From Octopus sinensis (lineage: Eukaryota): a stretch of 64,000 nt of DNA. Location: NCBI RefSeq assembly GCF_006345805.1, contig NC_043010.1, positions 60,574,001 through 60,638,000 of the forward strand, read 5' to 3'. Shown piece by piece: positions 1,549-63,536 of this stretch (position 1 is the first letter of the stretch; each line of letters starts with the position of its first letter). The translations under genes and the position numbers were made by a program. The notes under the pieces were generated by a model. That model was not told where the DNA came from. It did not search any database and saw only the letters and a list, made by a program, of their open reading frames with translations.

Positions 1549-1590
1549 AAATTTCTCCTGCTGAAATGTGATGAAGAATTCCAGACATGA
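1549..1590 (+). promoter_or_regulatory. Conserved splice acceptor plus 38-nt leader preceding the Pcdh ATG (present in all nine copies)
   Basis: Pyrimidine tract + TAG, then exactly 38 nt to the ATG in every copy (exon starts 1549, 9529, 15772, 22574, 31832, 40873, 48801, 54713, 63623). Similarity between copies drops just upstream of the AG. Confidence 0.8.
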
Positions 1591-4707: not shown

Positions 4708-5502
4708 TAGATGTTCCATGACTATTGTTAAATGATTCTCTCACACACCAAATCTTATACAATACTTTATATTCATATAAAAATATCAACTCTATGTTTC
4801 TTTCACACATTACACGCATAGAAGGCCTTACAGTGGTATCTATTATCATCCCTTTTTTACATCTCTGATACACTAAATATTACAAAACACCCAACTCTAC
4901 ATTACCATAGTTAATTATTATTAAACATTTATTTTACTGTCAGTTTTAGTATAGACATTTCACTAAAACTTAGATAAATTAACCTGATTCATCCTAGAAT
5001 GTTTAGTTTTTGTAGCTTTTAGTTTGATATCAATTCTATGTTTAATTAATATCATCTATTTTGTTTTATTGAGTGTTTTTAAAATTTTACTAATTAACAG
5101 TAGCTACAATTTAAGGGCGGCATACTGTTATCTATATTGAAAACATTAAAAGTTTTGTTAAATATTGAAATTTAAAGGGATTCATATTTTAGGAAGTATA
5201 AAGTAGAAAATGTCAGAAAAATAAGATTGTTCTTTTTTTTTACTTGGGAATACTTTTGTTTCTCCTAATTTACTTCGTTTACAGTTCCTCTAATCATGAA
5301 AACTTCTTAAATAATGAAATTTTTGTTGACTTACTCTAAAATTAATTTGTTTCTGATAGAAATCCTGATTATGTATTCTTATAGTGAAGTTAATATCAAG
5401 AAATATTATTATAAATCTTATATTTTAATACAAATCTCTTATTTCCTAACATTAGATATATAAATTTAGTGTTTTTATTAAATAGAAAAAATGAAGTTGC
5501 TT

Positions 5503-6190
5503 CTGTTTAACATGACTTCTCTTATTCAATGTGTTTGTGTGACACAGACCACATTGCAGTAATTTCCTATTGGATGAGAGAAATTTTCTCTATTTCTTTC
5601 AATATTGAAAGTGAGGCTGATAGCTTTTTTCTTTGTTCATCATACACACAATTGTGTGTGTGTGTGTGTGTGGAGGACATAGGGTTGTAACTAGCACACA
5701 CCAGCATCTGGCTAACATCTCACCTCCCACTACATACAGCAACTGTCACACTATTATATCAGCAGTTACACAGGAACAGCAGCAGCAGCTGCAGTAACAC
5801 AGGAACACTACTACAACAGCAGCAGTACCACTATAATACCACTACAGCAGTAGCAGCAGCAGTTAGAGTGGAACACTACAGCAGGATACACATCATCCAT
5901 CACACACAACTACAGTGAAGGATTAAACAATGCAGGTAAGTCTCTCTCTCTCTCCCTTTCTTCTCTTTATTATCTTTTCATATTCATTATAACATTTATA
6001 TTATTTGTGTTTCTTAATGAAAGACAGGGTAAGGATAATATCTAAAATGTCTGCCATGTTGTATATATACAGGGACTGGGACAGTGGAGGATCGAGAGAT
6101 CTAGCCATCACTTCCACCATTAACAACAACATCTGTAATAGACATTGTAATATAATTACTTCAAACTGCATTACGTCTTTTAACGTCAGA
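5503..6190 (+). promoter_or_regulatory. Conserved non-coding block 1 (candidate promoter + leader exon for copy B)
   Basis: ATTGG at 5569, palindrome CTTTCAATATTGAAAG 5596-5611, (GT)n, CAG-rich segment, donor CAG|GTAAGT at 5935/5936, second donor-like AGG|GTAAGG at 6028/6029. The block is near-identical in 8 units. Confidence 0.55.
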
Positions 6191-6440
6191 ATCAATCCTT
6201 ATTAATGAGATATTAAACTATATATATTGCTCTGATATTTCTTATGTATAATGGTTTAATATATTCCAAACTAGGTGTATATATATTTATTTCACTGTCG
6301 GAAAACATTGACTGATAACCAATAAGACTGGCTGTTAGTAATGCATGTCAGTGTATTGTATATCTGTTTTTGTCATAATAATTTACTAATTAAATCTTAA
6401 TCTTTCTCTACCTTCAGTGAACTCTAGCACATTGCTAATC

Positions 6441-6442
<2 letters not shown>

Positions 6443-6513
<71 letters not shown>

Positions 6514-8520: not shown

Positions 8521-9566
8521 TGGGAAGAGGATTACCATTCACAAAATGAGGTGTGTAGAGATAAAGTTGGGAGAATTACTCAAGGGAGATAACTCTCGTT
8601 ACGTATTTCTAGATGGCCCTTTGCTGTCCAAAATGATTGCTAATTGTAGTATTTTATATATAAAAAGGTGAAAGAAAAACAAACAGTGCTTCAGTTCTGT
8701 GTTTGTGCATATGCATACATTTATATGTATGAATAGGACAGTGTGCAGCGAATGCGGTTTTCTATACTTTGTCACAATCTGCTTCCTTCCTTTTTAAGTG
8801 TTTCTGTTTATATGTGTGTGTGTATAAATGCACATGTCTATAATTCTATTTTCTATGTATCTTTCTAAGTAAACATACACAAACAGATATATATCAGTCA
8901 AATACATAAGAATATTTTACACAAACACAAACACAAACTTTCACATTCCTCTCTTTTACATGCAGATACATATACACACACAGTGTTGAAGCGCTGCTTG
9001 ATTTTTGTTTCACTGTTGACCTTTCACCATTCCACTTCCATCGGTGGATCACCCTTTCCTTTCTCATTCCTATGTTGTGACAGATAAATATACAAGAGTA
9101 TTATTATAGTAGAAGATACACAATGCTCTCTTTGCCTCTTCCTTTTTCTCTCTCATTGCTATTACTTTCTCTCACTCTCCCTCAGTCATGGCTATTACTT
9201 TCACTACTTCTCCTTCACTGAATTACTATTTTGGCTCCTCTCTCTTCACCATTCATGCGTACTGCATGATTTTGGACAAATATATATATATATATATATG
9301 TATACAAATATATATATATATATATATGTGTATACAAATATATACAAACAATATGCTCATTATTATATTTGGAGATTATCTTGTAGATTATCAGACATGA
9401 GAAGACTATTCAATTGGGACTAATGAAACATTTTTACAAATAAACATAGAAGTGTCACAGTCGTTTTTATAAATATAATTTGGTTTACATTCTACATAAG
9501 CTTTAAATATCTTTGCTGTCTTTTGTAGAAATTTCTCCTGCTAAAGTGTGATGAAGAATTCCAGAC

Positions 9567-12500
9567 ATGACAGCATATATTGGTCTACTGTGTCTTCTAC
9601 ATTTACTGATCACCCTTGTACTGTCCATAGATATTACATACCATGTCAAGGAAGAAGACAGACCTCACACCTATATTGGAGACATTGCTGTTGACTCCAA
9701 CTTATCACACCCTCTCACACATCAACAACACACTCTCATTACATTTACACAACTACAAAGGACAGTCGAGAGTGGGTCTCACTTATTTAATGTCACCAAC
9801 TCAGGAAAACTATACACTACTCAAACACTGGATGCTGAGTCTCTGTGTACATACAACAAGGAATGTTCCAGAATAGTTAAAGTCGCAGTGAGGAAAGAAG
9901 AAACATTTATGAAAATTTTAAGGATAAAAATATTGATAGAAGACATCAATGACCATTCACCAGAATTTCCACAGAATGAAGTTGAGATTGAATTTTCTGA
10001 AAGAGACAGAAAAGGGGAAATGGTCTCCCTTCTAAATGCCATTGATCAGGATATTTCAGTCAAAAATTCTCAAATTACATATATAATTAAGAAAAGTAAA
10101 AGAGAACCATTTTCTCTCTCACTCACAAAACACAAAGGTATTTTCACACCTGAAATAATTCTAGAAGACAGATTAGACAGGGAAGTAAAAGACTCATATA
10201 TGTTGACCCTAGAAGCTAAAGATGGAGGAAACCCTCCCAAAACAGCTACACTCAAGGTACACATATCAGTAATAGATGTCAATGATAACATACCTGTATT
10301 TTCACAGGAAGTATACAACATCTCTATAATTAATTCACATCAAAGACATTTACCAATTCTTACTTTAAAGGCCACAGATCAAGATTCTGGACAAAATGGA
10401 AAGATATCTTTTCACTTCAACCATAAAACGTCTCGAAATATTCAGAAATATTTTGCATTAAATGAGAAGTCTGGAGATCTATTTTTACGTGATAATTTTC
10501 ATTTCAGTAAAAAGCAATCTTATAAATTATTTGTAGAAGCAAGAGATGGAGGGAAGCCACCAAAAAAGACTGTTGCAGCAGTTCAAATTAACATAATTAA
10601 CAACAAAAATACTGCTCCATTGATAAATATTGATTTTGTATCTCCTTTATCAGAGAGTTCTGCAGCTGTTTCGGAAGCAAGTAAAATTGGTAGTTTTATA
10701 GCTTATGTTATGGTCACTGACACTGATAGTGGACCTAATGGTGAGGTTATCTGTGATTTAAAACATGATAAATTTAAACTTGCCAAAATAGATTCTAAAG
10801 AATATAAAATGATTGTTAAGGGCCCTCTTGACAGAGAAATGAGGGACCACTATAAAGTATCTATTGTGTGTCATGACATGGGGTCACCTCAACTAGAAAG
10901 TAAAAAATATTTCTCTGTCAAAGTAACTGATGTCAATGATGTAGAACCACATTTTACCAAAGAGACATTCCAATTCCTCACCTATGAAAACCAGAAAGTT
11001 GACTTCCCTATTGGCTTCATCAATGCTACAGACCCGGATCTTGGAGATGGAGGCCAACTTACATATTCTATCATCAATGATAACAACAATGATAACATTC
11101 CTTTCCAACTGACAAAATATGGATTCATTTCTACATCACAATCAATAGATCGAGAAATGAAAGACATCTATAAGTTCAAGGTTTTAGTGAAAGATAATGG
11201 AACACCTTCTCTCAATGACACTACCAATATTGTTATTGAGATTCTAGATAAAAATGATAATGCTCCGTATTTTACGTTTCCTAATAATGACCCTTACAAT
11301 CTAGATGTCCACTACCATCCACACAGTAAGAAGGACATCACAATTCTGAGAGCATCTGACAAAGACACTGGAAACAATGCTTTCCTCACATATGGAATAC
11401 TGAGATCCAATGATAAAAACCTGTTTACAGTGAACTCACACACTGGTGTGTTATCTTTCTCTCGCACAGTTTACCAAAATGATGCAGGAACATATGAGCT
11501 GCAGTTTATAGTGAAAGACGGTGGTACTCCAGTTCAATCAGTGACAACTGCTATCATACTAACACTGTTTGTTAGTAATGATACATCTCCAATGTTGACT
11601 GCTGTGCCATTCCAGTCTGGTCACGACCTGAATATGACTTGGGTAATTATCATTGTAGCAGCAGCTGTAATACTATCTGTGGCTATTGTAGTGTCCATAA
11701 CACTGTGTGTTTTCAGATGTATTAATCACACAAATAACTCACCCACAACAGCAGAGAATCCCAACTTTCTCTCTCAGACTGAGATGAGACAATTACTGTA
11801 TCAGACTAACAATCCTGTTGCAATAACGAGAAATGCAGAAGAGATATTTAACCGAAATCTTCAGACAATAAAATCTAAAAGTCAGTTTTTTCTGGAGATG
11901 GAACAGACACCAGATGAGTGGAAATTCTCAACAACCCAAAGAAGACTTCCACCTGTACCTCAGGTGAATATTATTTTACATCTCTTATATCCTTTTGATT
12001 ATAAATACAAAAGTATTTAATCAATTATTGATGTGCATTCAAATATTTCTTTCAAATATCTATTTCAGATTCTCATGTGTATGAAATGTTTCATTCCTTT
12101 GTGACATTCTGAATTAATTGTTCTTTGGTGTCCTAGTGATAGCAAAATACAATATTCATTATCTAAATAGAATATGTTTTATATGAGAACTGTTTTATTA
12201 GGAGTCATCTGAACTTATATTGATATAAGATTCATTTTTCTATAATCGACAGAGATGTGATTCAATCCATAGTCAAGAACGTCGCACCAGTTCCATTATG
12301 TCTTACAACAGTGACACCTTAACATCCCAAAAGGACAGAGAAGCTAGCAAGAGTAATGGCAAGACTAAACCATATGATGAGATACCTGCAGAACCAGGTA
12401 ACTTTTATCAAAACATAACATATAAATGTAATTGCCTTTATTACTGTCGGACAATATATAATGTTATGCTTAGTGTAATATAAGATCAATGATTCTATCT

Positions 12501-13465: not shown

Positions 13466-14110
13466 TGTTTAACATGATTTCTGTTACTTGATGTGTTTGT
13501 GTGACACAGACCACATTGCAGTAATTTCCTATTGGATGAGAGAGATTTCCTATATTTCTTTCAATATTGAAAGTGAGGCTGATAGCTTTTTTCTTTGTTC
13601 ATCATACACACAATTGTGTGTGTGTGTGTGAAGGACATAGAGTTGTAACTAGCACACACCAGCATCTGGCTAACATCTCACCTCCCACTACATACAGCAA
13701 CTGTCACACTATTATATCAGCAGTTACACAGGAACAGCAGCAGCAGCAGCGGTAACACAGGAACACTACTACAACAGCAGTAGTACCACTATAATACCAC
13801 TACAGCAGCAGCAGCAGCAGGAGTGGAACACTACAGCAGGATACACATCATCCATCACTCACAACTACAGTGAAGGATGAAACAATGCAGGTAAGTCTCC
13901 CTCTCTCTCTCTTTCTCTTTATTATCTTTTCATATTCATTATAACATTTATATTATTTGTGTTTCTAGTGAAAGACAGGGTAAGGATAATATCTAAAATG
14001 TCTGCCATGTTGTATATATACAGGGACTGGGACAGTGGAGGATCGAGAGATCTAGCCATCACTTCCACCATTAACAATAACTGCAGTAGTCATTGTAATA
14101 TAATTACTTC
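13466..14110 (+). promoter_or_regulatory. Conserved non-coding block 2
   Basis: ATTGG 13531, palindrome 13558-13573, donor CAG|GTAAGT 13890/13891. Confidence 0.55.
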
Positions 14111-15357: not shown

Positions 15358-15809
15358 ATTATTATTATTGTTATCGTTATTGTTATTATCATTATTATTG
15401 TTATTATTATTATTATTGCATATGGATTTATCATAGAGTTTCTGTTATCAGTCACAGTGTTGTAACAAGCAATTTCAATATATTTCAAGATACTTGTTGT
15501 CCCATTTGAGTATATCAGTAAATATAAATTTTTAACAAAGCCATTAATCAATTCAGAAATTCTCAACATTGTGATTACATCATCATAGTTTTTAAAAATT
15601 ACTCTAAATATACCTCTAGCTAAATATTGTGGATGGACATTTTTAAATTGTTCACTTCAGTCAAATGAAATGTTTTCAGATTTAATTAATAATACATACA
15701 CAATGGTTATAATTATAGTTTATTTTATTAAATTTTATTTACTCTTTAAGTATTGTTGTTGTGTTTTGTAGAAATTTCTCCTGCTAAAGTGTGATGAAGA
15801 ATTCCAAAC

Positions 15810-18800
15810 ATGACAGCATATATTGGTCTACTGTGTCTTCTACATTTACTGATCACCCTTGCACTGTCCACAGATATTACATACCATGTCAATGAAGAAG
15901 GCAGACCTCACACCTATATAGGAGACATTGCTGTTGACTCTAACTTATCACACCCTCTCACACATCAACAACACACTCTCGTTACATTTACACAACTACA
16001 AAGGGCAGTCGATAGTGGTTCTCACTTATTTAACGTCACCAACTCAGGAAAACTATACACTACTCAAACACTGGATGCTGAGTCTCTGTGTACATACAAC
16101 AAGGAATGTTCCAGAATAGTTAAAGTAGCAGTGAGGAAAGGAAAAACTTTTATGAAGATTCTAAAAATTAAAATATTAATAGAAGACATCAATGACCATT
16201 CTCCAGAATTTCCACAGAATGAAGTTGAGATTGAATTTTCTGAGAAAGAGAGAAAAGGGGAAATGGTCTCCCTTCTAAATGCCATTGATCAGGATATTTC
16301 AGTCAAAAATTCTCAAATTACATATATGATTAAGAAAAGTAAAAGAGAACCATTTTCACTTTCTGTCACAAAACATGATGGTATTTTTATACCTAAACTC
16401 ATTCTAGAAGACAGATTAGACAGGGAAGTAAAAGATTCATATATGTTGATCTTGGAAGCTAAAGATGGAGGGAATCCTCCCAAAACAGCTACACTCAAGG
16501 TACACATAACTGTGACAGATGTCAATGATAATACACCTGTATTTTCACAGAAACTCTACAACATTTCTGTAAGCAATTCACATCAAAGACACTTACCAAT
16601 TCTTACTTTAAAAGCCACAGATCAAGATTCTGAGGATAATGGGAAAATTTCTTATCATTTCAACCATAAAACGTCTCGAAATGTCCAGAAATATTTTGTG
16701 TTAGATAAGAAAACTGGAGATTTATTTTTACATGACAAATTTCATTTTAGTAAAAAACAATCTTATAAATTATTTATTGAAGCAATGGATGGAGGTAAGC
16801 CACCAAAAAAGTCTGTTGCAGCAGTTCAGATTCAAATAATTAACAACAGAAATAATGTACCCATGATTAATATAGATTTTGTATCTCCTTTATCAGAGAG
16901 CTCAGCAACAGTTTCAGAAGACAGTGAAGTAGATAGTTTTATAGCTTATGTTATGGTCACTGACACTGATAGTGGACCTAATGGTGAGGTTATCTGTGAT
17001 TTAAAACATGATAAGTTTAAACTTGCTAAAATAGATTCTAAAGAGTATAAAATGGTTATTAAAGGTCATCTTGACAGAGAAATAAGGGACCACTATAAAG
17101 TATCTATTGTGTGTCATGACATGGGGTCACCTCAACTAGAAAGTAAAAAATATTTCTCTGTCAAAGTAACTGATGTCAATGATGTAGAACCACATTTTAC
17201 CAAAGAGACTTTCCAATTCCTCACCTATGAAAACCAGAAAGTTGACTTCCCTATTGGCTTCATCAATGCTACAGACCCTGATCTTGGAGATGGAGGCCAA
17301 CTTACATATTCTATCATCAATGATAACAACAATGATAACATTCCTTTCCAACTGACAAAATATGGATTCATTTCTACATCACAATCAATAGATCGAGAAA
17401 TGAAAGACATCTATAAGTTCAAGGTTTTAGTGAAAGATAATGGAACACCTTCTCTCAATGACACTGCCAATATTGTATTGAGATTCTAGATAAAAATGAC
17501 AATGCTCCGTATTTTACGTTTCCTAATAATGACCCTTACAATCTCTTTCCTCAATATGGAATACTGAGATCCAATGATAAAAACCTGTTTACAGTGAACT
17601 CACCCACTGGTGTGTTATCTTTCTCTCGCACAGTTTTACCAAAATGATGCAGGAACATATGAGCTGCAGTTTATAGTGAAAGACGGGTGGTACTCCAGTC
17701 AATCAGCAACAACTCTGCTATCATACTAACACTGTTTGTTAGTAATGATACATCTCCAATGTTGACTGCTGTGCCATTCCAGTCTGGTCACGACCTGAAT
17801 GACTGGGTAATTATCATTGTAGCAGTCAGCTGTAATACTATCTGTGGCTATTGTAGTGTCCATAACACTGTGTGTTTTCAGATGTATTAATCACACAAAA
17901 CTCACCCACAACAGCAGAGAATCCCAACTTTCTCTCTCAGACTGAGATGAGACAATTACTGTATCAGACTAACATCCTGTTGCAATAACGAGAAATGCAG
18001 AAGAGATATTTAACCGAAATCTTCAGACAATAAAATCTAAAGTCAGTTTTTTCTGGGATGGAACAGACACCAGATGAGTGGAAATCTCAACAACAACACA
18101 AAGGAGACTTCCACCTGTGCCTCAGGTAAATATTATTTTACATCTCTGATATCCTTTTGATTATAAATACAAAAGTATTTAATCAATTATTGATGTGCAT
18201 TCAAATATTTCTTTCAAATATCTATTTCAGATTCTCATGTGTATGAAACGTTTCGTTCCTTTGGTTAAAATTTCTGGCTTTTCTGTGACATTCTGAATTA
18301 ATTGTTCTTTGTTGTCCTAGTGATAGCAAAACACAATATTCATTATCTAAATAGAATACACTTTATATAAGAAATGTTTTATTAGGAGTGATCTAAACTT
18401 GTATTGATATCAGATTCCTTTTTCTATAATCAACAGAGATGTGATTCAATCCATAGTCAAGAACGTCGCACCAGTTCCATCATGTCTTACAACAGTGACA
18501 CCTTAACATCCCAAAAGGACAGAGAAGCTAGCAAGAGTAATGGCAAGACTAAACCATATGATGAGATACCTGCAGAACCAGGTAACTTTTACCGAAACAT
18601 AACATATAAATGTAATTGCCTTTATTACTGTAGGACAATATATAATGTTATGCTTAGTGTAATATAAGATCAATGTTTCTATCTTTATATATTGGAGTTG
18701 TTATATTGAAATGTAATTTGTGTTTGTATATTTGATATTTTGCAGAATATACCAATGACAATCCAGTTGCATCCACAATACTAAAGGGACAACAAATACA

Positions 18801-19610: not shown

Positions 19611-20280
19611 TGTTTAACATCATTTCTCTTGTTTGATGTGTTTGTGTAACACAGACAACATTGCAGTAATTTCCTATTGGATGAGAGAGATTTTCTATAT
19701 TTCTTTCAATATTGAAAGTGAGGCTGATAGCTTTTTTCTTTGTTCATCATACACACAATTGTGTGTGTGTGTGTGTGTGTGTGGAGGACATAGAGTTGTA
19801 ACTAGCACACACCAGCATCTGGCTAACATCTCACCTCCCACTACATACAGCAACTGTCACACTATTATATCAGCAGTTACACAGGAACAGCAGCAGCAGT
19901 AACACAGGAACACTACTACAACAGCAGCAGTACCACTATAATACCACTAGCAGTAGCAGCAGCAGTTGGAGTGGAACACTACAGCAGGATACACATCATC
20001 CATCACACACAACTACAGTGAAGGATTAAACAATGCAGTAAGTCTCCCCCTCTCTCTCTCTTCTTTCTTATATCTTTTCATATTCATTATAACATTTATA
20101 TTATTTGTGTTCTAATGAAAGACAGGGTAAGGATAATATCTAAAATGTCTGCCATGTTGTATATATACAGGGACTGGGACAGTGGGGATCGAGAGATCTA
20201 GCCATCACTTCCACCATTAACAACAACAACTGCAGTAGTCATTGTAATACAATTACTTTGAACTGGATTACGTCTTTGAA
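19611..20280 (+). promoter_or_regulatory. Conserved non-coding block 3
   Basis: ATTGG 19676. Donor reads ATGCAGTAAGT at ~20038, one G shorter than in other copies. Confidence 0.5.
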
Positions 20281-20883: not shown

Positions 20884-22611
20884 TAAAGATGTTGGTCAAT
20901 ATTATTTCGTGTAGATTTGTTATTTAAGATATTTAGTGTGATATATAAAGCAATTATATTGTCATGTGTTGTTAAAATATATTAATCCTGACAACAAAAG
21001 ATGAATATTGAGAATTATTCAGATATAATATCATTTCTCTACAAATTAACAAACATTTCATTATTACAGTTGTTAATACGCCATTATGTAAACTGTTGGT
21101 CAATATTATTGTTCGTGTAAATTTGGTTATTTCAGATATTTAGTGTGATCTATAACGCATTATATTGGTCATTGTTGTTCAAATATATTAATCTGATAAA
21201 GAACACAAGATGAATATTGAGAATGACTCAAAGATAATATACATCATTTCTATATCTCTCTACAAATTAACCAACATTTCATTATTACAGTTGTTAATTC
21301 TATATATAATATAACAGAAATACTTATATATATAAAATCTAAATGTTATATGTAAATAGGGATTAAATTACTTTAATTACAATTAATTTGATAAGAAAGA
21401 TATCTACATATTTCATGAAGATAATTATACATCTTTTTCCATCAAAAACATATAACTCCACCATTTTATAATTCCCATTTTTGTAAATTATTTCCACATA
21501 ATTTTATAATCTATTCTTTGTCAGTTATTTGTGAAATAAGTCAACAAGACATCTTCTATCCAGGTTATTAGGTTTCTTAGATACACTTATCCTACATTTC
21601 TGTGAAACAGGTATATTATTATCAAATGTCTTTCAACCCCTTTCATACCAACTTGCCTCTAATTGTGCCAGGTTTATGATGAACTATTAACTTCCTTCTT
21701 AAAGTGCTTTAAATTAAAGCTTTCCATTCAATTTCATCTTGATTTGTGTTCCAATCACCAGATTCATTTTGACAAAGTTATTTACTAAATTTTTTGCTGT
21801 ATTTTGAAATTGATCGAAACAAAAGCAATGTATTCCAACAGAAATACGGTAACAAAAGAGAGAAATTCCAACCAACAAGACACAATAAAGTACATTTAGT
21901 TATCATGTCCTTATCTTTCGCTCTGCAACCTAAACTTCATTAATTAAATATCTCGAGAGACTACTGTTCATTAATTTCACAATATATTTTACTTCTCTCT
22001 TTTGATTAGGACCTACCATCAGCTTAGATGGTAGGTCTAATTGTAGAATTAGACCTACCATCAGCTTAGAGTAGAATTGCTGTTGTTTTCATATTGTATA
22101 TATCATTAATCTCCAAAGACTAAAATCTTTCTCTGTGATGTAAATTTAAAGGGTTTTAATATTTCCTTGTCAGAGTCTGCATTATTCAAGCTGTCAACAT
22201 TCTGTCATCATTTCTGGTTTATTATATTCAGGATTACTTTATCAAGTATATTCATCTATTTGTAAGACTGTAGAATCAGATTTAAAGGTTGGGCTGCCTT
22301 TTACTACCACAGACAGAATGACCATATAAAAGTTCTTACATTGGCTCAGACCATCACTTTACATCACATATCAAAGTCTGGTTCTCAGCTAGATGGAGGC
22401 ATGGTATAACTGCAACAATAACGTTATGTTTGTAAACTATTAGTTTAAAGTTTTAAGTTTAGCTTCAGGGAATATAACAAAGTACAATGAATAACATCTA
22501 CACAATGACTGCTTTATTTTAGTTTATTTTATTGAATTTTATTTAGACTTTCAATGTCTGTTATGTTTTGTAGAAAACTCTCCTGCTAAAGTGTGATGAA
22601 GAATTCCAGAC

Positions 22612-25600
22612 ATGACACCATATATTGGTCTACTGTGTCTTCTACCTTTACTGATCACCCTTGTACTGTCCATAGATATTGCATACCATGTCAAGGAAGA
22701 AGACAGACCTCACACCTATATAGGAGACATTGCTGTTGACTCCAACTTATCACATCCTCTCACGCATCAACAACACACTCTCATTACATTTACACAACTA
22801 CAAAGGACAGTCGAGAGTGGTTCTCACTTATTTAATGTCACCAACTCAGGAAAACTATACACTACTCAAACACTGGATGCTGAGTCTCTCTGTACATACA
22901 ACAAGGAATGTTACAGAACTGTGAAGGTGGCAGTGAGGAAAGGAAAAACGTTTATGAAGATTCTAAGGATAAAAATATTAATAGAAGACATCAATGACCA
23001 TTCTCCAGAGTTTCCACAGAATGAAGTTGAAATTGAATTTCTCGAAAGCCAATTTAAAGGTACTAAAATCTCACTTTTAAATGCCATTGATCAAGATATT
23101 TCAATAAAGAATTCTCAAATTACATATATGCTAAAAAAAAGTAAAAGAGAACCATTTTCTCTCTCAGTCACAAAACAGGATGGTATTTTTATACCTGAAC
23201 TGACTTTAGCAGATAAATTAGACAGGGAACTAAAATATTCATATATGTTGACACTGGAAGCTAAAGATGGAGGAAACCCTGCCAAAACAGCTACACTCAA
23301 GGTACACATATCTGTAACAGATGTCAATGATAACACACCTGTATTTTCACAGAAACTCTACAACATCACTATAAGTAATTCACATCAAAGACATTTACCA
23401 ATTCTTACTTTAAAAGCCACAGATCGAGATTCTGGAGACAATGGAAAGATTTCTTATCATTTCAACCATAAAACATCTCAAAATGTCCAGAAATATTTTG
23501 TATTAGATAAGAAAACTGGAGATTTATTTTTACATGATAATTTTCATTTCAGTAAAAGGCAATCTTATAAATTATTCATTGAAGCGCAGGATGGCGGCAA
23601 CCCTCCTCTAAAGACAGTAGCTAGAGTTCACATTTATGTGATTAATAATAGGAATGCTGCTCCATTGATAAACATAGATTTTGTATCTCCTTTATCAAAG
23701 AGCTCAGCAGCAGTTTCAGAAGACAGTGAAGTAGATAGTTTTATAGCTTATGTTATGGTCACTGACAATGATAGTGGACCTAATGGTGAGGTTATCTGTG
23801 ATTTAAAACATGATAAGTTTAAACTTGCCAAAATAGATTCTAAAGAGTATAAAATGATTGTTAAGGGCCATCTTGACAGAAATAAGGGACCACTATAAAG
23901 TATCTATTGTGTGTCATGACATGGGGTCACCTCAACTAGAAAGTAAAAAATATTTCTCTGTCAAAGTAACTGATGTCAATGATGTAGAACCACATTTTAC
24001 CAAAGAGACATTCCAATTCCTCACCTATGAAAACCAGAAAGTTGACTTCCCTATTGGCTTCATCAATGCTACAGACCCTGATCTTGGAGATGGAGGCCAA
24101 CTTACATATTCTATCATCAATGATAACAACAATGATAACATTCCTTTCCACTGACAAAATATGGATTTATTTCTACACACAACCATATAGATCGAGAAAT
24201 GAAAGACATCTATAAGTTCAAGGTTTTAGTGAAAGATAATGGAACACCTTCTCTCAATGACACTGCCAATATTGTTATTGAGATTCTAGATAAAATGACA
24301 ATGCTCCGTATTTTACGTTTCCTAATAATGACCCTTACAATCTCGATGTCCACTACCATCCACACAGTAAGAAGGACATCACAATTCTGAGAGCATCTGA
24401 CAAAGACACTGGAAACAATGCTTTCCTCACATATGGAATACTGAGATCCAATGATAAAAACCTGTTTACAGTGAACTCACACACTGGTGTGTTTATCTTT
24501 CTCTCGCACAGTTTACCAAAATGATGCAGGAACATATGAGCTGCAGTTTATAGTGAAAGACGGTGGTACTCCAGTTCAATCAGCAACAACTGCTATCATA
24601 CTAACACTGTTTGTTAGTAATGATACATCTCCAATGTTGACTGCTGTGCCATTCCAGTCTGGTCACGACCTGAATATGGACTTGGGTAATTATCATTGTA
24701 GCAGCAGCTGTAATACTATCTGTGGCTATTGTAGTGTCCATAACACTGTGTGTTTTCAGATGTATTAATCACACAAATAACTCACCCACAACAGCAGAGA
24801 ATCCCAACTTTCTCTCTCAGACTGAGATGAGACAATTACTGTATCAGACTAACAATCCTGTTGCAATAACGAGAAATGCAGAAGAGATATTTAACCGAAA
24901 TCTTCAGACAATAAAATCTAAAAGTCAGTTTTTTCTGGAGATGGAACAGACACCAGATGAGTGGAAATTCTCAACAACACAAAGGAGACTTCCACCTGTG
25001 CCTCAGGTAAATACTATTTTACATCTCTGATATCCTTTTGATTATAAATACAAAAGTATTTAATCAATTATTGATGTGCATTCAAATATTTCTTTCAAAT
25101 ATCTATTTCAGATTCTCATGTGTATGGAACGTTTCGTTTCTTTGGTTAAAATTTCTGGCTTTTCTGTGACATTCTGAATTAATTGTTCAGATATTTTCGG
25201 TTTGAATGGCAGTTTTTTCTAGCGGTGTCATATGAAATTGTCACCCATAATTATGACCCTAGTATCGATCTATTGCATTTCAATCTATTTTAGGGTTAGG
25301 GGTGGGGGAAGGGTATCTTCTTTTCTTCACAAATGTAAATAAACCCAATCTGTTTCTTAAACGAGGGACATATTCATACGGCACAGAATGTTGTTTACCT
25401 TAATGGACGTCAGTGATTGGTTGAAATTGCAGAAATTGAAGAAAAAAACAAAAAATACCTTACAAACTGTAGAATTTTCTCAATAAAGCCAAGAGAAAAA
25501 GATGTTTTATAAACACTCTCTACCAGTATACGAAGTTTAACATTTTTTAGTTACCTAGAAATTATGATAAAAACTGCCGTTCAAACCGAAAAGATCCAAT

Positions 25601-26940: not shown

Positions 26941-27600
26941 CTGTTTAACATGAATTCTGTTGTTTGATGTGTTTGTGTGACACAGACAACATTGCAGTAA
27001 TTTCCTATTGGATGAGAGAGATTTTCTATATTTCTTTCAATATTGAAAGTGAGGCTGATAGCTTTTTTCTTTGTTCATCATACACACAATTGTGTGTGTG
27101 TGTGTGGAGGACATAGAGTTGTAACTAGCACACACCAGCATCTGGCTAACATCTCACCTCCCACTACATACAGCAACTGTCACACTATTATATCAGCAGT
27201 TACACAGGAACAGCAGCAGCCAGCTGCAGTAACACAGGAACACTACTACAACAGCAGCAGTATACCACTATAATACACACAGCAGCATAGCAGCAGCAGT
27301 TGGAGTGGAACACTACAGCAGGATACACATCATCCATCACACACAACTACAGTGAAGGATTAAACAATGCAGGTAAGTCTCTCTCTCTCTCTCTCTTTTC
27401 TCTTTATTATCTTTTCATATTCATTATAACATTTATATTGTTTGTGTTTCTAATGAAAGACAGGGTAAGGATAATATCTAAAATGTCTGCCATGTTGTAT
27501 ATATACAGGGACTGGGACAGTGGAGGATCGAGAGATCTAGCCATCACTTCCACCATTAACTACAATAACTGCAGTAGTCATTGTAATATAATTACTTCTT
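26941..27600 (+). promoter_or_regulatory. Conserved non-coding block 4
   Basis: ATTGG 27007, donor CAG|GTAAGT 27372/27373. Confidence 0.55.
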
Positions 27601-31655: not shown

Positions 31656-31869
31656 TAGCGAATATTCACTTAGTCTTTTCCAAGAGGGTAACCCTTGCTA
31701 AATATTCAGGATTAACATTTTAAGGGAGTGTATTCAGATCTAATTAATAATACTTACATGATGACTATTAAAATTATAATTATTTTATTGAATTTTGTTT
31801 AGCCTTTAAATATCATTGTTGTCTTTTATAGCAATTTCTCCTGTTGAAATGTGATGAAGAATTCCAGAC

Positions 31870-34800
31870 ATGACACCATATATTGGTCTACTGTGTCTTC
31901 TACATTTACTGATCACCCTTGTACTGTCCATAGATATTACATACCATGTCAAGGAAGAAGACAGACCTCACACCTATATAGGAGACATTGCTGTTGACTC
32001 CAACTTATCACACCCTCTCACACATCAACAACACACTCTCATTACATTACACACTACAAAGGACAGTCGAGAGTGGGTTCTCACTTATTTAATGTCACCA
32101 ACTCAGGAAAACTCTATACACTACTCAAACACTGGATGCTGAGTCTCTGTGTACATACAACAAGGAATGTTCCAGAACAGTTAAAGTCGCAGTGAGGAAA
32201 GGAACAACTTTTATGAAAATTTTAAGGATAAAAATATTAATAGATGACATCAATGATTATTCCCCAGAATTTCCACAGAATGAAGTTGAAATTGCATTTT
32301 CTGAGACAGACAGTAAAGGAACTAGAATATCTCTTCCAAATGCAATTGATAAAGATATTTCAATAAAAAATTCTCAAATTACGTATACAATTAAGAAAAG
32401 TAAGAGAGAACCATTTTCTCTCTCTGTTACAAAACACAAAGGTATTTTCACACCTGAAATAATTCTGGAAGACAAATTAGACAGGGAACTCAAAGATTCA
32501 TATATGTTGACCTTGGAAGCTAAAGATAGAGGGAACCCTCCCAAAACAGCTACACTGAAGATACACATATCTGTAACAGATGTTAATGATAACATACCTG
32601 TATTTTCACAGGAAGTCTACAACATCACTATAAATAGTTCACATCAAAGACATTTACCATTCCTTACTTTAAAAGCCACAGATCAAGATTCTGGACAAAA
32701 TGGAAAGATTTCTTTTCATTTCAACCATAAAACGTCTCGAACTGTCCAGAAATATTTTGTATTAGATAAGAAAACTGGAGATCTATTTTTACATGATAAT
32801 TTTCATTTTAGTAAAAAGCAGTCTTATAAATTATTTGTAGAAGCAAGAGATGGAGGGAAGCCACCAAAAAAACTGTTGCCACTGTTCAAATTCACATAAT
32901 TAACAACAAAAATACTGCTCCATTGATAAATATAGATTTTGTATCTCCTTTATCAGAGAGTTCAGCAGCAGTTTCAGAATCAAGTAAAATTGGTAGTTTT
33001 ATAGCTTATGTTATGGTCACTGACACTGATAGTGGACCTAATGGTGAGGTTATCTGTGATTTAAAACATGATAAATTTAAACTTGCCAAAATAGATTCTA
33101 AAGAATATAAAATGATTGTTAAGGGCCATCTTGACAGAGAAATAAGGGACCACTATAAAGTATCTATTGTGTGTCATGACATGGGGTCACCTCAACTAGA
33201 AAGTAAAAATATTTCTCTGTCAAAGTAACTGATGTCAATGATGTAGAACCACATTTTACCAAGAGACATTCCAATTCCTCACCTATGAAAACCAGAAAGT
33301 TGACTTCCCTATTGGCTTCAATCAATGCTACAGACCCTGATCTTGGAGATGGAGGCCAACTTACATATTCTATCATCAATGATAACAACAATGATAACAT
33401 TCCTTTCCAACTGACAAAATATGGATTTATTTCTACATCACAATCAATAGATCGAGAAATGAAAGACATCTATAAGTTCAAGGTTTTAGTGAAAGATAAT
33501 GGCACCTTCTCTCAATGACACTGCCAATATTGTTATTGAGATTCTAGATAAAAATGATAATGCTCCGTATTTTACGTTTCCTAATAATGACCCTTACAAT
33601 CTAGATGTCCACTACCATCCACACAGTAAGAAGGACATCACAATTCTGAGAGCATCTGACAAAGACACTGGAAACAATGCTTTCCCTCACATATGGAATA
33701 CTGAGATCCAATGATAAAAACCTGTTTACAGTGAACTCACACACTGGTGTGTTATCTTTCTCTCGCACAGTTTACCAAATGATGCAGGAACATATGAGCT
33801 GCAGTTTATAGTGAAAGACGGTGGTACTCCAGTTCAATCAGCACAACTGCTATCATACTAACACTGTTTGTTAGTAATGATACATCTCCAATGTTGACTG
33901 CTGTGCCATTCCAGTCTGGTCACGACCTGAATATGACTTGGGTAATTATCATTGTAGCAGCAGCTGTAATACTATCTGTGGCTATTGTAGTGTCCATAAC
34001 ACTGTGTGTTTTCAGATGTATTAATCACACAAATAACTCACCCACAACAGCAGAGAATCCCAACTTTCTCTCTCAGACTGAGATGAGACAATTACTGTAT
34101 CAGACTAACAATCCTGTTGCAATAACGAGAAATGCAGAAGAGATATTTAACCGAAATCTTCAGACAATAAAATCTAAAAGTCAGTTTTTCCTGGAGATGG
34201 AACAGACACCGGATGAATGGAAATTCTCAACAACACAGAGGAGACTTCCACCTGTGCCTCAGGTAAATGTATATTTTAAACATTCCTCTATTTTGATAGC
34301 AAATTTTTGGCATTCTTCAAAATATGTTTTAAGTTTGTAGTGACATTTACAGGTTCTGTCCCAATTCTTATATCTTCCCTATAAAAGACAGTGTCTTTTA
34401 CATAATTTTACATTTTTCAGAAGGAATAGATTTAAGATTTACATCCATATCATTAAACTAGTGTCTTTGTTTTGTTTATTCTGCCCTCTTAAATAATTCT
34501 TAACTTAGAAAATGTTTAATTATAATATTTCCAATTTTTAAAAGAGGAATTTTTTTTTTGTGTTTTGCCAGGAACATTCTAGAATACAAATAGAAATGCT
34601 TTTATTTAACATAATGTTTTGTTCTGTTTTCTAATCAACAGAGATGTGATTCAATCCATAGTCAAGATCGTCGTACCAGTTCCATCATGTCTTACAACAG
34701 TGACACCTTAACATCCCAAAAGGACAGAGAAGCTAGCAAGAGTAATGGTAAGACTAAACCATATGATGAGATACCTGCAGAACCAGGTAACTTTTACCGA

Positions 34801-35792: not shown

Positions 35793-36490
35793 TCTGTGTA
35801 ACATGACTTCTTTTGTTTGATGTGTTTGTGTGACACAGACAACATTGCAGTAATTTCCTATTGGATGAGAGAGATTTTCTATATTTCTTTCAATATTGAA
35901 AGTGAGGCTGATAGCTTTTTTCTTTGTTCATCATACACACAATTGTGTGTGTGTGTGTGTGTGGAGGACATAGAGTTGTAACTAGCACACACCAGCATCT
36001 GGCTAACATCTCACCTCCCACTACATACAGCAACTGTCACACTATTATATCAGCAGTTACACAGGAACAGCAGCAGCACAGTAACACAGGAACACTACTA
36101 CAACACAGCAGCAGTACCACTATAATACCACTACAGCAGCAGCAGCAGCAGTTGGAGTGGAACACTACAGCAGGATACACACATCATCCATCACACACAA
36201 CTACAGTGAAGGATTAAACAATGCAGGTAAGTCTCTCTCTCTCTCCTTCTCTCTCTTTCTCTTTATTATCTTTTCATATTCATTATAACATTTATATTGA
36301 TTTGTGTTTCTAATGAAAGACAGGGTAAGGATAATATCTAAAATGTCTGCCATGTTGTATATATACAGGGACTGGGACAGTGGAGGATCGAGAGATCTAG
36401 CCATCACTTCCACCATTAACACAACAAGAACTGCAGTAGTCATTGCAATACAATTACTTTGAACTGGATTACGTCTTTTAATGTCAGAAT
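35793..36490 (+). promoter_or_regulatory. Conserved non-coding block 5
   Basis: ATTGG 35860, donor CAG|GTAAGT 36226/36227. Confidence 0.55.
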
Positions 36491-40408: not shown

Positions 40409-40910
40409 ATCAATCTTATCAAGTACCTTCAAATCCAAAAATACTTCCATACAGCATTTTCTTATTTTCAAAATTTTCACTTCATCAAGTCCATTAAAAT
40501 TGTCTACATTAGAAATTGCTTTTAAATTTTAGACACCCTAAAATGAGGGATGGTGTTTCTGATGGTTTCATCAATAATCTGGGTTCATCACAGATTTCCA
40601 ACTCACATTATATTTGAGACATTACCATGTTTCAGAATAATAACCAGAAGTTTTTCTTTCTCTCGTAGTGCTCACATGGTAATGCACATTCTCAGAGCAT
40701 ATGAGTTTCTTTTTGTATCACTTCAGTTCTTCATTTTTGTTTCAGGTGGTGAGATGGGTAACTTTTTCATTACTTTTCACTCTGTTGGAAATAACATTTA
40801 CACCATAAATATTATAATTTTCTTTTATTTAATTATTCCATAGTCTTTACATATGTTTGTTGTCTTTTGTAGCAATTTCTCCTGCTAAAGTGTGATGAAG
40901 AATCCCAGAC

Positions 40911-43900
40911 ATGACACCATATATTGGTCTACTGTGTCTTCTACATTTACTGATCACCCTTGTACTGTCCATAGATATTACATACCATGTCAAGGAAGAA
41001 GACAGACCTCACACCTATATAGGAGACATTGCTGTTGACTCCAACTTATCACACCCTCTCACACATCAACAACACACTCTCATTACATTTACACAACTAC
41101 AAAGGACAGTCGAGAGTGGTTCTCACTTATTTAATGTCACCAACTCAGGAAAACTATACACAACTCAAACACTAGATGCTGAGTCTCTGTGTACATACAA
41201 CAAGGAATGTTCCAGAATTGTTAAAGTAGCAGTGAGGAAAGAAGAAACATTTATGAAAATATTGAAGATAAAAATTTTGATAGAAGACATCAATGACCAT
41301 TCTCCAGAATTTCCAGAGAATGAAGTTGAAATTCGATTTTCAGAAAGAGATAGAAAAGGAGATAAAATCCCAATTCTAAATGCCATTGATGAAGATATTT
41401 CCATAAAAAATTCTCAGATTACTTATATGATTAAGGAAAGTAAGAGAGAACCATTTTCTCTCTCTGTTACAAAGCGTGACAGTATTTTCATACCTGAATT
41501 AATTCTAGAAGATAAACTAGATAGGGAGGTAAAAGACTCATATATGTTGAACCTGGAAGCTAAAGATGGAGGGAATCCTCCCAAAACAGCTACACTCAAG
41601 GTACACATATCTGTGACTGATTTTAATGATAACATACCTGTATTTTCACAGAAACTCTACAACATCTCTATTACTAATTCACATCAAAGACATTTACCAA
41701 TTCTTACTTTAAAAGCCACAGATCAAGATTCTGGAGACAATGGAAAGATTTCTTACCATTTCAACCATAAAACATCTCGAAATATCCAGAAATATTTTGT
41801 ATTGGATAAGAACACTGGAGATATATTTTTACATGATAATTTTCATTTCAGTAAAAAGCAGTCTTATAAATTATTTATAGAAGCAAGAGATGGAGGGAAT
41901 CCCCCTCTCAAATCAGTAGCCAGAGTTCACATTTATGTTATTAATAACCAGAATAATGCTCCATTAATAAATATAGATTTTGTATCTCCTTTAACAGAGA
42001 GCTCAGCAGCAGTTTCAGAAGCAAGTAAAATTGGTAGTTTTATAGCTTATGTTATGGTCACTGACACTGATAGTGGACCTAATGGTGAGGTTATCTGTGA
42101 TTTAAAACATGATAAGTTTAAACTTGCCAAAATAGATTCTAAAGAATATAAAATGATTGTTAAGGGCCACCTTGACAGAGAAATAAGGGACCACTATAAA
42201 GTATATATTGTGTGTCATGACATGGGGTCACCTCAACTAGAAAGTAAGAAATATTTCTCTGTCAAAGTAACTGATGTCAATGATGTAGAACCACATTTTA
42301 CCAAAGAGACATTCCAATTCCTCACATATGAAAACCAGAAAGTTGACTTCCCTATTGGCTTCATCAATGCTACAGACCCGGATCTTGGAGATGGAGGCCA
42401 ACTTACATATTCTATCATCAATGATAACAACAATGATAACATTCCTTTCCAACTGACAAAATATGGATTTATTTCTACATCACAACCAATAGATCGAGAA
42501 ATGAAAGACATCTATAAGTTCAAGGTTTTAGTGAAAGATAATGGAACACCTTCTCTCAATGACACTGCCAATATTGTTATTGAGATTCTAGATAAAAATG
42601 ATAATGCTCCGTATTTTACGTTTCCTAATAATGACCCTTACAATCATGATGTCCACTACCATCCACACAGTAAGAAGGACATCACAATTCTGAAAGCATC
42701 TGACAAAGACACTGGAAACAATGCTTTCCTCACATATGGAATACTGAGATCCAATGATAAAAACCTGTTTACAGTGAACTCACACACTGGTGTGTTATCT
42801 TTCTCTCGCACAGTTTACCAAAATGATGCAGGAACATATGAGCTGCAGTTTATAGTGAAAGACGGTGGTACACCAGTTCAATCAGCAACAACTGCTATCA
42901 TACTAACACTGTTTGTTAGTAATGATACATCTCCAATGTTGACTGCTGTGCCATTCCAGTCTGGTCACGACCTGAATATGACTTGGGTAATTATCATTGT
43001 AGCAGCAGCTGTAATACTATCTGTGGCTATTGTAGTGTCCATAACACTGTGTGTTTTCAGATGTATTAATCACACAAATAACTCACCCACAACAGCAGAG
43101 AATCCCAACTTTCTCTCTCAGACTGAGATGAGACAATTACTGTATCAGACTAACAATCCTGTTGCAATAACGAGAAATGCAGAAGAGATATTTAACCGAA
43201 ATCTTCAGACAATAAAATCTAAAAGTCAGTTTTTTCTGGAGATGGAACAGACACCAGATGAGTGGAAATTCTCCACAACACAGAGGAGACTTCCACCTGT
43301 GCCTCAGGTAAATATTATTTTGGGTAATAGATGTTTTTGTTTTATTTCTTATTATTTTAAGAGTATTTTATTCTTTATTCACATACGCACAATTATTACT
43401 ACAGAAAACTCACATTCAGTCCCTCTTGTGTACAAAATTTTTTGTCTTTAGTTAATATTTTTTGTATAGCTTTTGCCATTTGAATTGATTATTTTGTATA
43501 ATGTCACAGATATCAAAACAGTTACAGTATTCATTATAGAAATGCAATACACTTTATATACAAACAAATAATTAGGAGTGATCTAAACTTGTATTGATAT
43601 AAGATTCCTCTTTCTATAATCAACAGAGATGTGATTCAATCCATAGTCAAGGACGTCGCACAAGTTCCATCATGTCTTACAACAGTGACACCTTAACATC
43701 CCAAAAGGACAGAGAAGCTAGCAAGAGTAATGGCAAGACTAAACCATATGATGAGATACCTGCAGAACCAGGTAACTTTTATCAAAACATAACATACAAA
43801 TGTAATTGCCTTTATTACTGTAGGACAATATATAATGTTATGCTTAGTGTAATATAAGATCAATGTTTCTATCTTTATATATTGGAGTTGTTATATTGAA

Positions 43901-44855: not shown

Positions 44856-45550
44856 CTATTTAACATGGATTCTGTTACTTGATGTGTTTGTGTGACACAG
44901 ACCACATTGCAGTAATTTCCTATTGGATGAGAGAGATTTTCTATATTTCTTTCAATATTGAAAGTGAGGCTGATAGCTTTTTTCTTTGTTCATCATACAC
45001 ACAATTGTGTGTGTGTGTGTGTGTGGAGGACATAGAGTTGTAACTAGCACACACCAGCATCTGGCTAACATCTCACCTCCCACTACATACAGCAACTGTC
45101 ACACTATTATATCAGCAGTTACACAGGAACAGCAGCAGCAGCAGCAGTAACACAGGAACACTACTACAACAGCAGCAGTACCACTATAATACCACTACAG
45201 CAGCAGCAGCAGCAGTTGGAGTGGAACACTACAGCAGGATACACATCATCCATCACACACAACTACAGTGAAGGATTAAACAATGCAGGTAAGTCTCTCT
45301 CTCTCTCTCCTCTCTCTTTCTCTTTATTATCTTTTCATATTCATTATAACATTTATATTATTTGTGTTTCTAATGAAAGACAGGGTAAGGATAATATCTA
45401 AAATGTCTGCCATGTTGTATATATACAGGGACTGGGACAGTGGAGGATCGAGAGATCTAGCCATGACTTCCACCATTAACAACAGCAAGAACTGCAGTAG
45501 TCATTGTAATTCAATTACTTTGAACTGGATTATGTCTTTTAATGTCAGAA
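44856..45550 (+). promoter_or_regulatory. Conserved non-coding block 6
   Basis: ATTGG 44922, donor CAG|GTAAGT 45288/45289. Confidence 0.55.
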
Positions 45551-48006: not shown

Positions 48007-48838
48007 GATGGCAATATATATAAGTTGGTGTAGATTTGTTATTTAAGATATAATTTATTGAGATGTGAATTAAATTGGAAATTTATATTTGTGATGTTAA
48101 TGAATACACAAGCATTTTTTAATTCTGTGAATTAATGTGTATATTTCTAGTTATAATGTCAGTTTATTCCTAAAGGTTTAATTATACTAAATTTTAAATA
48201 TTTAGTTTCATTTAACACTTTCATTACCAACCTGGTTGAAACTGCCTCTGGCTCTTGTTTTCATAAGTTTTGAATTAAAATCTTCCACCAAACCTTAGAC
48301 ACAATTTATGTTCCTAACACTAGCTGAATGATAACTAAGTTATTTTACTAAATTCTTTGTTATATTTAAAGTAATTGAAAGAAATACAGAGCATCTCAAA
48401 ATAAATGCAGTAACGAATGGGTAAAACAATGTATTGCATCTGTTCCAACAAATATTTTGGTGAGTGTATAAATCTCATTACAACAAAAACTATTTGTTCA
48501 CTAATTGTCAAAGTCAAATAAACACAGAACCTACAACACATTGTTTCACACATAGTAATGTCTTTTATATAAGGAATTCTGAATGATAAATAATGAGACA
48601 TATTGACAATTCAGATCAGGCTGTTTTATTCTGTAGAGATAAGCCTACCCATTAATGACTGTCACGTCAGGAAGAGATGGTTATAAAAATGGAATGTCGC
48701 ATGTAACATAGAATATTTACATATGTATATGTATATAACATCAACCCATTATTGTTTCTATAAGAAATTTTACTTTCTCTATTCCTCTTTTCTTTTGTAG
48801 CAATTTCTCCTGCTAAAGTGTGATGAAGAATCCCAGAC

Positions 48839-52715: not shown

Positions 52716-53134
52716 TTCTGTTTAACATGACTTCTCTTGTTCGATGTGTTTGTGTGACACAGACAACATTGCAATAATTTCCTATTGGATGAGAGAGATT
52801 TTCTATATTTCTTTCAATATTGAAAGTGAGGCTGATAGCTTTTTTCTTTGTTCATCATACACACAATTGTGTGTGTGGAGGACATAGAGTTGTAACTAGC
52901 ACACACCAGCATCTGGCTAACATCTCACCTCCCACTACATACAGCAACTGTCACACTATTATATCAGCAGTTACACAGGAACAGCAGCAGCAGTAACACA
53001 GGAACACTACTACAACAGCAGCAGTACCACTATAATACCACTACAGCAGCAGCAGCAGCAGTTGGAGTGGAACACTACAGCAGGATACACATCATCCATC
53101 ACACACAACTACAGTGAAGGATTAAACAATGCAG

Positions 53135-54542: not shown

Positions 54543-54645
<103 letters not shown>

Positions 54646-54750
54646 CCATTGACCTGTTTGCTATTATTTGCATAAGTTATTTTATTTTCAATACTGCTGT
54701 TGTCTTTTGTAGCAATTTCTCCTGCTCAAATGTGATGAAGAATTCCAGAC

Positions 54751-63497: not shown

Positions 63498-63536
<39 letters not shown>

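Follow-up and report, generated by a model that had tools for sequence, protein, structure and literature searches.

Octopus protocadherins are a textbook example of neuronal recognition molecules that expanded independently, and to our knowledge almost nothing is known about the control of their expression. The described translational controls by upstream open reading frames (uORFs) include stop-start arrangements for termination-reinitiation, in which a stop codon overlaps the next start (AUGA or UGAUG), and the uORF1/uORF2 logic of GCN4 and ATF4. Reinitiation at zero spacing is inefficient. Conserved-peptide uORFs form another class, which includes the AdoMetDC MAGDIS uORF, the fungal arginine attenuator peptide and the plant CPuORFs. 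Genome-wide, upstream AUGs (uAUGs) were found to be selected and uORF coding regions to be mostly neutral (PMC7889888). Cephalopod protocadherin arrays have been described as multi-exonic genes in the same orientation that are homogenised by gene conversion and have no shared constant exons (PMC9068888; array descriptions also in PMC6339937). Here we describe an octopus array in which each gene, judging from sequence and gene models, probably carries a short uORF that runs from the end of a non-coding exon 1 to the gene's own start codon. A literature search found no papers that link uORFs to cephalopod protocadherins or describe this uORF.

The window, i.e. the whole stretch of 64 kb that was analysed, is a tandem protocadherin array of Octopus sinensis with nine head-to-tail gene copies (Table 1) and a G+C content of 27-39%. 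All units showed the same order, with a leader and big exon followed by two small C-terminal exons and a conserved intergenic block. The leader comprises 38 nt, the big exon about 2.4 kb (ending in ...PPVPQ before a GT donor) and the C-terminal exons 144 nt and 78 nt, the latter with the stop codon. The 799-aa product of gene 2 showed 92% identity to 'protocadherin beta-15-like' of Octopus sinensis, up to 92% identity to O. vulgaris and about 82% to Argonauta hians. Every unit encoded its own copies of both C-terminal exons, and we did not find the one shared constant set of vertebrate-type variable-to-constant splicing. This unit structure agrees with published cephalopod protocadherin arrays (PMC9068888, PMC6339937). 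Among the eight complete genes the big exon was intact only in genes 2, 6 and 7 and was frame-disrupted or stop-containing in the other five, which are either pseudogenes or the result of indel errors in the assembly. All five genes with broken big exons nevertheless have perfect leaders and exon-1 blocks. Identity within the window therefore mostly reflects recent duplication or gene conversion and not selection, and the evidential weight rests on the comparison of Octopus with Argonauta only.

Table 1. Features of the protocadherin array, numbered from the first letter of the window (here and in the text, a slash marks a splice boundary)
Feature	Position	Strand	Remarks
Main ATGs, genes 1 to 9	1587, 9567, 15810, 22612, 31870, 40911, 48839, 54751, 63661	+	
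Gene 1 leader and ATGA	1549..1590	+	38 nt after TTTTGTAG acceptor
Gene 2 leader and ATGA	9529..9570	+	big exon intact; predicted partner donor 5935, intron 3593 nt
Gene 3 leader and ATGA	15772..15813	+	
Gene 4 leader and ATGA	22574..22615	+	AAAACT variant (K T L...)
Gene 5 leader and ATGA	31832..31873	+	
Gene 6 leader and ATGA	40873..40914	+	big exon intact
Gene 7 leader and ATGA	48801..48842	+	big exon intact
Gene 8 leader and ATGA	54713..54754	+	
Gene 9 leader and ATGA	63623..63664	+	gene extends past the window; source of models P0128 and P0004
Second upstream ATG (gATGaag)	1571..1573 (gene 9 equivalent 63645)	+	invariant in all Octopus copies
Disrupted big exons	1587-3982, 15810-18125, 22612-25006, 31870-34262, 54751-57147		first in-frame stops at aa 593, 559, 428, 90, 117
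Conserved intergenic block, gene 2	5404..6507	+	
Homologous blocks, other seven units	13385, 19566, 26861, 35716, 44777, 52673, 58426		
ATG-free stretch, 353 nt	5577..5929	+	upstream of uATG; CCAAT-like ATTGG 5569-5573 just upstream
Exon-1 end, gene 2	5930..5937	+	uATG 5930-5932, CAG, GT donor, within GGATTAAACAATGCAG/GTAAGT
Exon-1 end ATGCAG, gene 3	13885..13890	+	extra out-of-frame ATG 14 nt before donor
Exon-1 end, gene 4	20033..20037	+	1-nt deletion, ATGCA/GTAAGT; predicted uORF becomes MQKLSC and stop (6 aa)
Exon-1 end ATGCAG, gene 5	27367..27372	+	
Exon-1 end ATGCAG, gene 6	36221..36226	+	
Exon-1 end ATGCAG, gene 7	45283..45288	+	
Exon-1 end ATGCAG, gene 8	53129..53134	+	
Exon-1 end ATGCAG, gene 9	58909..58914	+	

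A pattern search of the window for the 3' end of the leader plus ATGA returned nine occurrences on the + strand, with 0 expected by chance. In all nine units the 38-nt leader directly follows the TTTTGTAG acceptor, and alignment showed that similarity between units begins abruptly at the polypyrimidine tract and TAG acceptor and continues through the leader into the signal-peptide codons. From the acceptor, frame 0 reads (K/Q)(F/T)LLLKCDEE(F/S)QT and a stop in 9/9 leaders. This stop, TGA, consists of the main ATG and the next A, and ACATGA was present in every unit of the window. The initial annotation had pointed out both the frame and the overlap of its TGA with the protocadherin ATG, and translation confirmed them. 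It had also listed codons that vary among the nine leaders, and the same sites were recovered, namely Leu5 (CTG/CTA/CTC/TTG), Lys6 (AAA/AAG), Gln12 (CAG/CAA) and Gln1 (CAA/CAG). Frame 1 of the leader contains a stop in eight of nine copies, and frame 2, the protocadherin frame, reads TGATGA in all nine. An N-terminal extension of protocadherin, which had already been dismissed on the same grounds, is thereby ruled out. The leader was also present in Argonauta, and its length of 38 nt was kept in 16/16 Octopus and 9/13 Argonauta leaders (one of these nine from a more diverged gene in L007).

Several further elements were observed in and around the leader. The second upstream ATG (Table 1) opens an out-of-frame ORF of about 47 codons across the protocadherin start and sits within the 15-aa uORF described below. 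Public model P0004 begins at the gene 9 copy of this internal ATG, skips one base at 63756 and regains the protocadherin frame. Four of the nine leaders (1566-1571, 31849-31854, 54730-54735 and 63640-63645) contain AAATG and with it a minimal start-stop (ATG TGA) in the protocadherin frame; the other five read AAGTG. The start-stop element AAATGTGA was rejected as a fixed feature, being present in only 4/9 window copies (AAA vs AAG), and since it is polymorphic it is probably non-functional. Long (TA)n and (TG)n microsatellites were found at about 54551-54650 and 63461-63560, within intron 1 of genes 8 and 9 and roughly 100-200 nt ahead of the leader.

Each intergenic region contained a conserved block of about 1.1 kb with the consensus donor GATTAAACAATGCAG/GTAAGT. 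Across all eight units the core of this block, about 650 nt, was near-identical, and its identity in Argonauta was still about 70%. Between paralogs this core, which takes in about 220 nt of intron past the donor, varies less than the coding sequence for the middle cadherin repeats. Further elements of the block were the conserved ATTGG, a (TG)n microsatellite at about 5652-5673 and, in the majority of copies, a TATA-like CTATATTT. We infer that it comprises promoter, exon 1 and proximal intron 1, with promoter and transcription start near the conserved ATTGG, where the ATG-free stretch begins; the block is probably a promoter plus regulatory element. The ATG-free stretch itself is probably the body of a 5'UTR exon. 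The Octopus copies had no other ATG over about 350 nt upstream of the uATG, where about 5 were expected (per-copy P about 0.005 by shuffling); in Argonauta about 260 nt were free of other ATGs, against about 3 expected (P about 0.04). Such a pattern would be expected of a 5'UTR exon under selection against stray start codons.

We compared 27 exon-1 donor sites with 16 distinct sequences, taken from O. sinensis (window, L001), O. vulgaris (L003, L009), A. hians (L002, L004, L006-L008) and a sister subfamily with 73% identity (L005). The ATG at -6 to -4, A at -3 and the GT were invariant in 27/27 sites, whereas positions -30 to -16 were only 44-75% conserved and the second codon after the uATG varied (CAG, CAA, AAG, CTG). 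The uATG lies inside GATTAAACAATG, an invariant motif of 12 nt that exceeds a Kozak context in length and might be bound by protein on DNA or RNA. In the O. vulgaris ortholog of gene 4 the exon-1 end was intact (L009 7288-7293, AATGCAG/GT vs AATGCA/GT in the window), and the 1-nt deletion in gene 4 may be an assembly error. Two phase-0 donors had been proposed to feed frame 0 of the leader, and both are present, the block-exon donor as ATG CAG/GTAAGT (gene 2, Table 1) and the big-exon donor as ...CCT CAG/GTAAAT at 3982. All coding junctions are phase 0 (5930-5935 in the window with 4319, 12253 and equivalents). If exon 1 (ATG CAG/) were spliced directly to the first of the C-terminal exons, a tail-only product of 76 aa, MQ+RCDSIHSQ...YLQPT, would result; the idea is purely speculative, and the product was in no gene model.

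The junction of block and leader was found in an annotated model. P0128, which starts at 63661 in gene 9, has the tail ...SEGLNNA/EISPAKV and a stop, in which the block exon is joined exactly to the leader acceptor. At the nucleotide level this tail (...ITHNYSEGLNNA/EISPAKV) connects the block CAG/ to /AAATTTCTCC..., translated in another frame. The independently annotated O. vulgaris model P0136 ends in KISPAKV and a stop at the same leader acceptor, via a dubious 6-nt micro-exon. This micro-exon (TCCAAA, L003 7142-7147) is flanked by AG and GTAAGT, and P0136 uses it to link the first C-terminal exon to the leader of the next gene. Its GT is missing in most O. sinensis copies (CCAAACTAG), and the micro-exon is probably an annotation device. 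The block donor and the leader acceptor were the only strongly conserved splice signals between block and coding exon in both genera. It is thus likely, on sequence and gene-model grounds, that the leader is a spliced 5'UTR segment and the block exon ending in ATG CAG/GT its partner. The earlier suggestion that the block exon feeds the leader is supported by the junction in P0128 (a gene model), by the uATG at 27/27 sites in three species and by the presence of the leader in Argonauta. A search with the exon-1/leader translation found no translated transcript fragments of exon 1, and the five protein clusters examined contained genome-derived models only and no assembled RNA contigs. The position of model P0149 was not found when sought. 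The Argonauta model P0008 (953 aa) was rejected as a block-to-leader tail, its extension being a duplicated C-terminal exon.

We predicted uORFs by pairing each leader with the nearest upstream donor in 29 genes of three species (16 Octopus, 13 Argonauta); for five of the 29 the donor was outside the fetched locus and ATGCAG was assumed. A uORF of 15 aa with stop-start overlap was predicted in 23 of the 29 genes, among them, with the 1-nt deletion at 20037 disregarded, every one of the 16 Octopus genes. In one Argonauta gene an in-frame 6-nt deletion leaves a uORF of 13 aa with the same overlap. TGA thus overlaps the main ATG in 24/29 genes, counting gene 4, though its assembly copy loses the overlap by the 1-nt deletion. 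In three Argonauta genes the uORFs have 6-9 aa and end 8-23 nt before the main ATG, and in two with leaders of 34 and 25 nt they have 52-55 aa and run out of frame into the CDS. A premature stop (three) or a frame-shifting length (two) was accordingly present in 5/13 Argonauta leaders. The predicted frame has the stop that a uORF requires, at or before the main CDS start and out of frame with the CDS, and as in other stop-start pairs the upstream stop overlaps the downstream AUG. In the sister subfamily with 73% identity (L005) the exon-1 ATG is kept and the leader has 22 or 37 nt, which would give a long overlapping uORF. In a subfamily with 56% identity (L010) the leader measures 40 nt, and within 10 kb an exon-1 motif was not recognised. 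As far as these comparisons go, the stop-start design appears common and old, yet not inviolable.

The best overall explanation, to which we assign a probability of about 0.6, is a junction-spanning, position-dependent cis uORF that would serve as a brake common to the subfamily; most likely it is an ordinary translational brake and not a conserved hidden peptide. In each protocadherin gene the leader would make up the 3' portion of the 5'UTR. A non-coding and AUG-free exon 1 of about 300 nt would lie 1.4-5.6 kb upstream in the conserved promoter/exon-1 block and would end in an AUG in good context (A at -3), one codon and a consensus donor (AACAATG CAG/GTAAGT). Splicing to the leader would then create a uORF across the junction, with 15 codons in Octopus, the start MQ(K/Q) and a UGA that shares bases with the main AUG (AUGA). 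The context of the main AUG is G at -3 and A at +4, that of the uAUG A at -3. Scanning ribosomes would initiate mostly at the uAUG, cross the internal out-of-frame AUG of the leader while elongating, and terminate right where the main AUG lies. Translation of the main ORF would depend on leaky scanning or inefficient zero-distance reinitiation. Because reinitiation at zero spacing is inefficient the net effect would be repression, possibly tunable, for which the position of the uORF would matter and the peptide would not. RNA structure or a known RNA family is not a competing explanation, since the spliced exon-1 end with leader and signal-peptide region showed no folding advantage over shuffled sequences (z = -0.01), the conserved piece of intron that follows the donor gave z = -0.35, and Rfam families had no match in the window.

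If the uORF is translated, one translational brake would act on a whole subfamily of at least 29 genes in two octopod genera. It would arise only through splicing of a non-coding first exon, and would offer a simple testable handle on post-transcriptional control of these genes. If it is not translated, the finding is that of an ordinary conserved 5'UTR exon junction.

The frame had originally been described as conserved synonymously, which would fit a selected 15-aa product, i.e. a micropeptide or the nascent chain of a peptide-dependent ribosome-stalling uORF. We consider such selection quite improbable. Substitutions were counted by parsimony on neighbour-joining trees, with a null in which each event was moved to another site with the same ancestral base. 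For the nine window copies this gave 6 silent and 5 replacement changes (null silent 3.2, P=0.055), so that the original count of about 6 silent versus 3-4 replacement changes was about right but the excess is not significant alone. The 16 Octopus copies showed a nominal silent excess in frame 0 (9 silent vs 8 replacement, null silent 4.4-4.7, P=0.007-0.014) and none in the other two frames. Five codons moreover encode Leu at uORF residue 7 across the genera (CTG, CTA, CTC, TTG, TTA), and the C-terminal ...C(D/N)E(E/K)FQT is largely retained in Argonauta. However, the seven Argonauta copies with 38-nt leaders showed 9 silent and 32 replacement changes (null silent 6.9-8.1, P=0.22-0.42), an omega of about 0.9 and events spread flat over codon positions (14/15/12). 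All 23 copies together gave 18 silent and 45 replacement changes (null silent 11.9-13.4, P 0.02-0.09), with frame 1 about level with frame 0 (frame 1 P 0.06-0.12). With more paralogs the silent excess hence stayed nominal in Octopus and disappeared in the divergent Argonauta set, and the claim of synonymous conservation is not supported. The test is low-powered on short sequences, as even the true CDS frame gave only P=0.04 over its first 120 nt (23 copies).

Where the changes fall also speaks against selection on the peptide. Per site we counted 2.5 events for the 5' half of the leader, 0.86 for the 3' half and 0.51 for the CDS next to it; evolution of the 5' half is thus about 5 times faster than that of this CDS, and the 3' 20 nt beside the AUG change at about the CDS rate. 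Third positions of the 3' half were also conserved, which points to constraint at the nucleotide level, and some Argonauta copies carry nonsense changes and frame-shifting indels. The purifying selection and the freedom from nonsense and frameshift variants that characterise conserved-peptide uORFs were therefore not found here, with a test of low power. The constraint seems to sit near the main AUG and on the uAUG, and not on the amino acids, a pattern that agrees with a selected uAUG and a neutral uORF coding region (PMC7889888). At the other extreme, the uORF might be altogether incidental to a plain 5'UTR leader, with the exon-1 ATG kept as part of a 12-nt DNA or RNA motif, GGATTAAACAATG, and the leaders similar through gene conversion and constraint on the start-codon context. 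This explanation is possible, and we hold it to be rather unlikely. The motif resembles what we take to be a K50-homeodomain GGATTA site beside a SOX-type AACAATG site, and it might alternatively be a splicing enhancer. The invariant stretch from -15 to -4 exceeds the needs of a start context, the whole block of about 650 nt including about 220 nt of intron is near-identical among paralogs, and perfect leaders are retained by broken genes, in line with the gene-conversion homogenisation reported in cephalopod protocadherin arrays (PMC9068888). The stop-start arrangement was also lost in several Argonauta genes and in the sister subfamily, and an open frame of 13 codons is unremarkable by itself (chance about 0.4 by our rough estimate from base composition). 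In contrast, the AAATAATG copies break the SOX-like core and yet keep the ATG with A at -3, and the ATG is always 3 nt from the donor, even where an insertion shifts GATTA (Argonauta TACAACAATG copies). The ATG-free stretch of 250-350 nt, too, stops precisely at the uATG. Whatever conserved it, scanning ribosomes will make use of an AUG that has a good context and lies in a spliced leader.

Read-through from the upstream gene into the leader had been proposed as a further source of frame 0, giving either a short alternative tail after PPVPQ or a stop-start bicistronic RNA; this we regard as extremely unlikely. The big-exon donor at 3982 is in phase 0 and fits the frame, chained models exist in three species (P0160 and P0127, P0137, P0148 and P0152 among them), and in P0128 the final coding exon of gene 9 is connected with the block exon and leader that come next. 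The alternative tail, however, was absent from every gene model examined, and no chained model has a junction between the PPVPQ donor and the leader acceptor. The fused models are joined in other ways, with a weak donor inside the stop codon (ACATA/GTAGAT) that is missing in two Argonauta genes, and with internal acceptors or the 6-nt micro-exon, which look like frame-keeping devices. Exons are near-identical between units, which makes the mapping of spliced reads ambiguous, and each gene has its own CCAAT-like conserved upstream region. A combined scheme was judged highly doubtful. In it the block exon would be both a first exon and an internal exon of read-through RNAs, and the stop-start uORF would gate translation of the downstream protocadherin on multi- or single-gene RNA, a control in every unit that is possibly peptide-dependent.

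The public gene models of these arrays showed several irregularities. Models that chain two to six neighbouring genes were found in O. sinensis, O. vulgaris and O. bimaculoides (P0160 with 3333 aa, P0127 with 1794 aa, P0137, P0142, P0148 with 4355 aa and P0152 with 5758 aa). Their junctions have the donor within the stop codon and acceptors within the block exon or the signal-peptide codons, and they stem either from genuine read-through or from an artefact that near-identical repeats produce. In O. vulgaris many models (759-767 aa; L009 3323, 10001 and 17894, L003 20934) begin at an internal Met (MKIL...) about 115 codons past the conserved MTAYIGLL start, though leader and ATG exist in the DNA. 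This looks like systematic 5' truncation in annotation. Among the public models several begin from an incorrect AUG, stop within the leader or fuse adjacent genes, and a translated uORF would point to a systematic hazard in the annotation of such loci.

The junction-spanning uORF and the stop-start overlap are both known kinds of element. Regulatory uORFs of animals (PMC7889888) share with the octopus leader an AUG with an in-frame stop at or before the main start, a start that is conserved while the peptide drifts, and the depletion of other uAUGs. The octopus uAUG differs in lying on the last six bases of exon 1, so that the uORF exists only after splicing. The design is also repeated in dozens of tandem paralogs, and its translation is here predicted. 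As in stop-start pairs and the GCN4 and ATF4 leaders, the octopus uORF stop overlaps the main AUG, by two bases, and a length of 15 codons permits reinitiation; like uORF2 of ATF4, an inhibitory out-of-frame AUG overlapping the CDS is also present. Unlike in ATF4 and GCN4, this inhibitory AUG is inside the first uORF and not after it, and the zero spacing is expected to make reinitiation poor. We know of no eIF2 dependence or tethering sequence for the octopus uORF. With the conserved-peptide uORFs it shares its shortness and a partly kept C-terminal ...CDEEFQT beside the stop, whereas conservation of the amino acids was unsupported once Argonauta was included and some copies have nonsense and frameshift variants. 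The array resembles vertebrate clustered protocadherins in its tandem large ectodomain exons, each with a conserved upstream element, and in having homogenised ends and diversified middle cadherin repeats. Shared constant exons are reportedly not used by cephalopods (PMC9068888), and the octopus unit differs from the vertebrate one in having its own two C-terminal exons and a non-coding first exon. What appears to be new is the setting, a design that the sequences suggest is common to a tandem octopod protocadherin subfamily, retained between Octopus and Argonauta and absent from a more distant subfamily.
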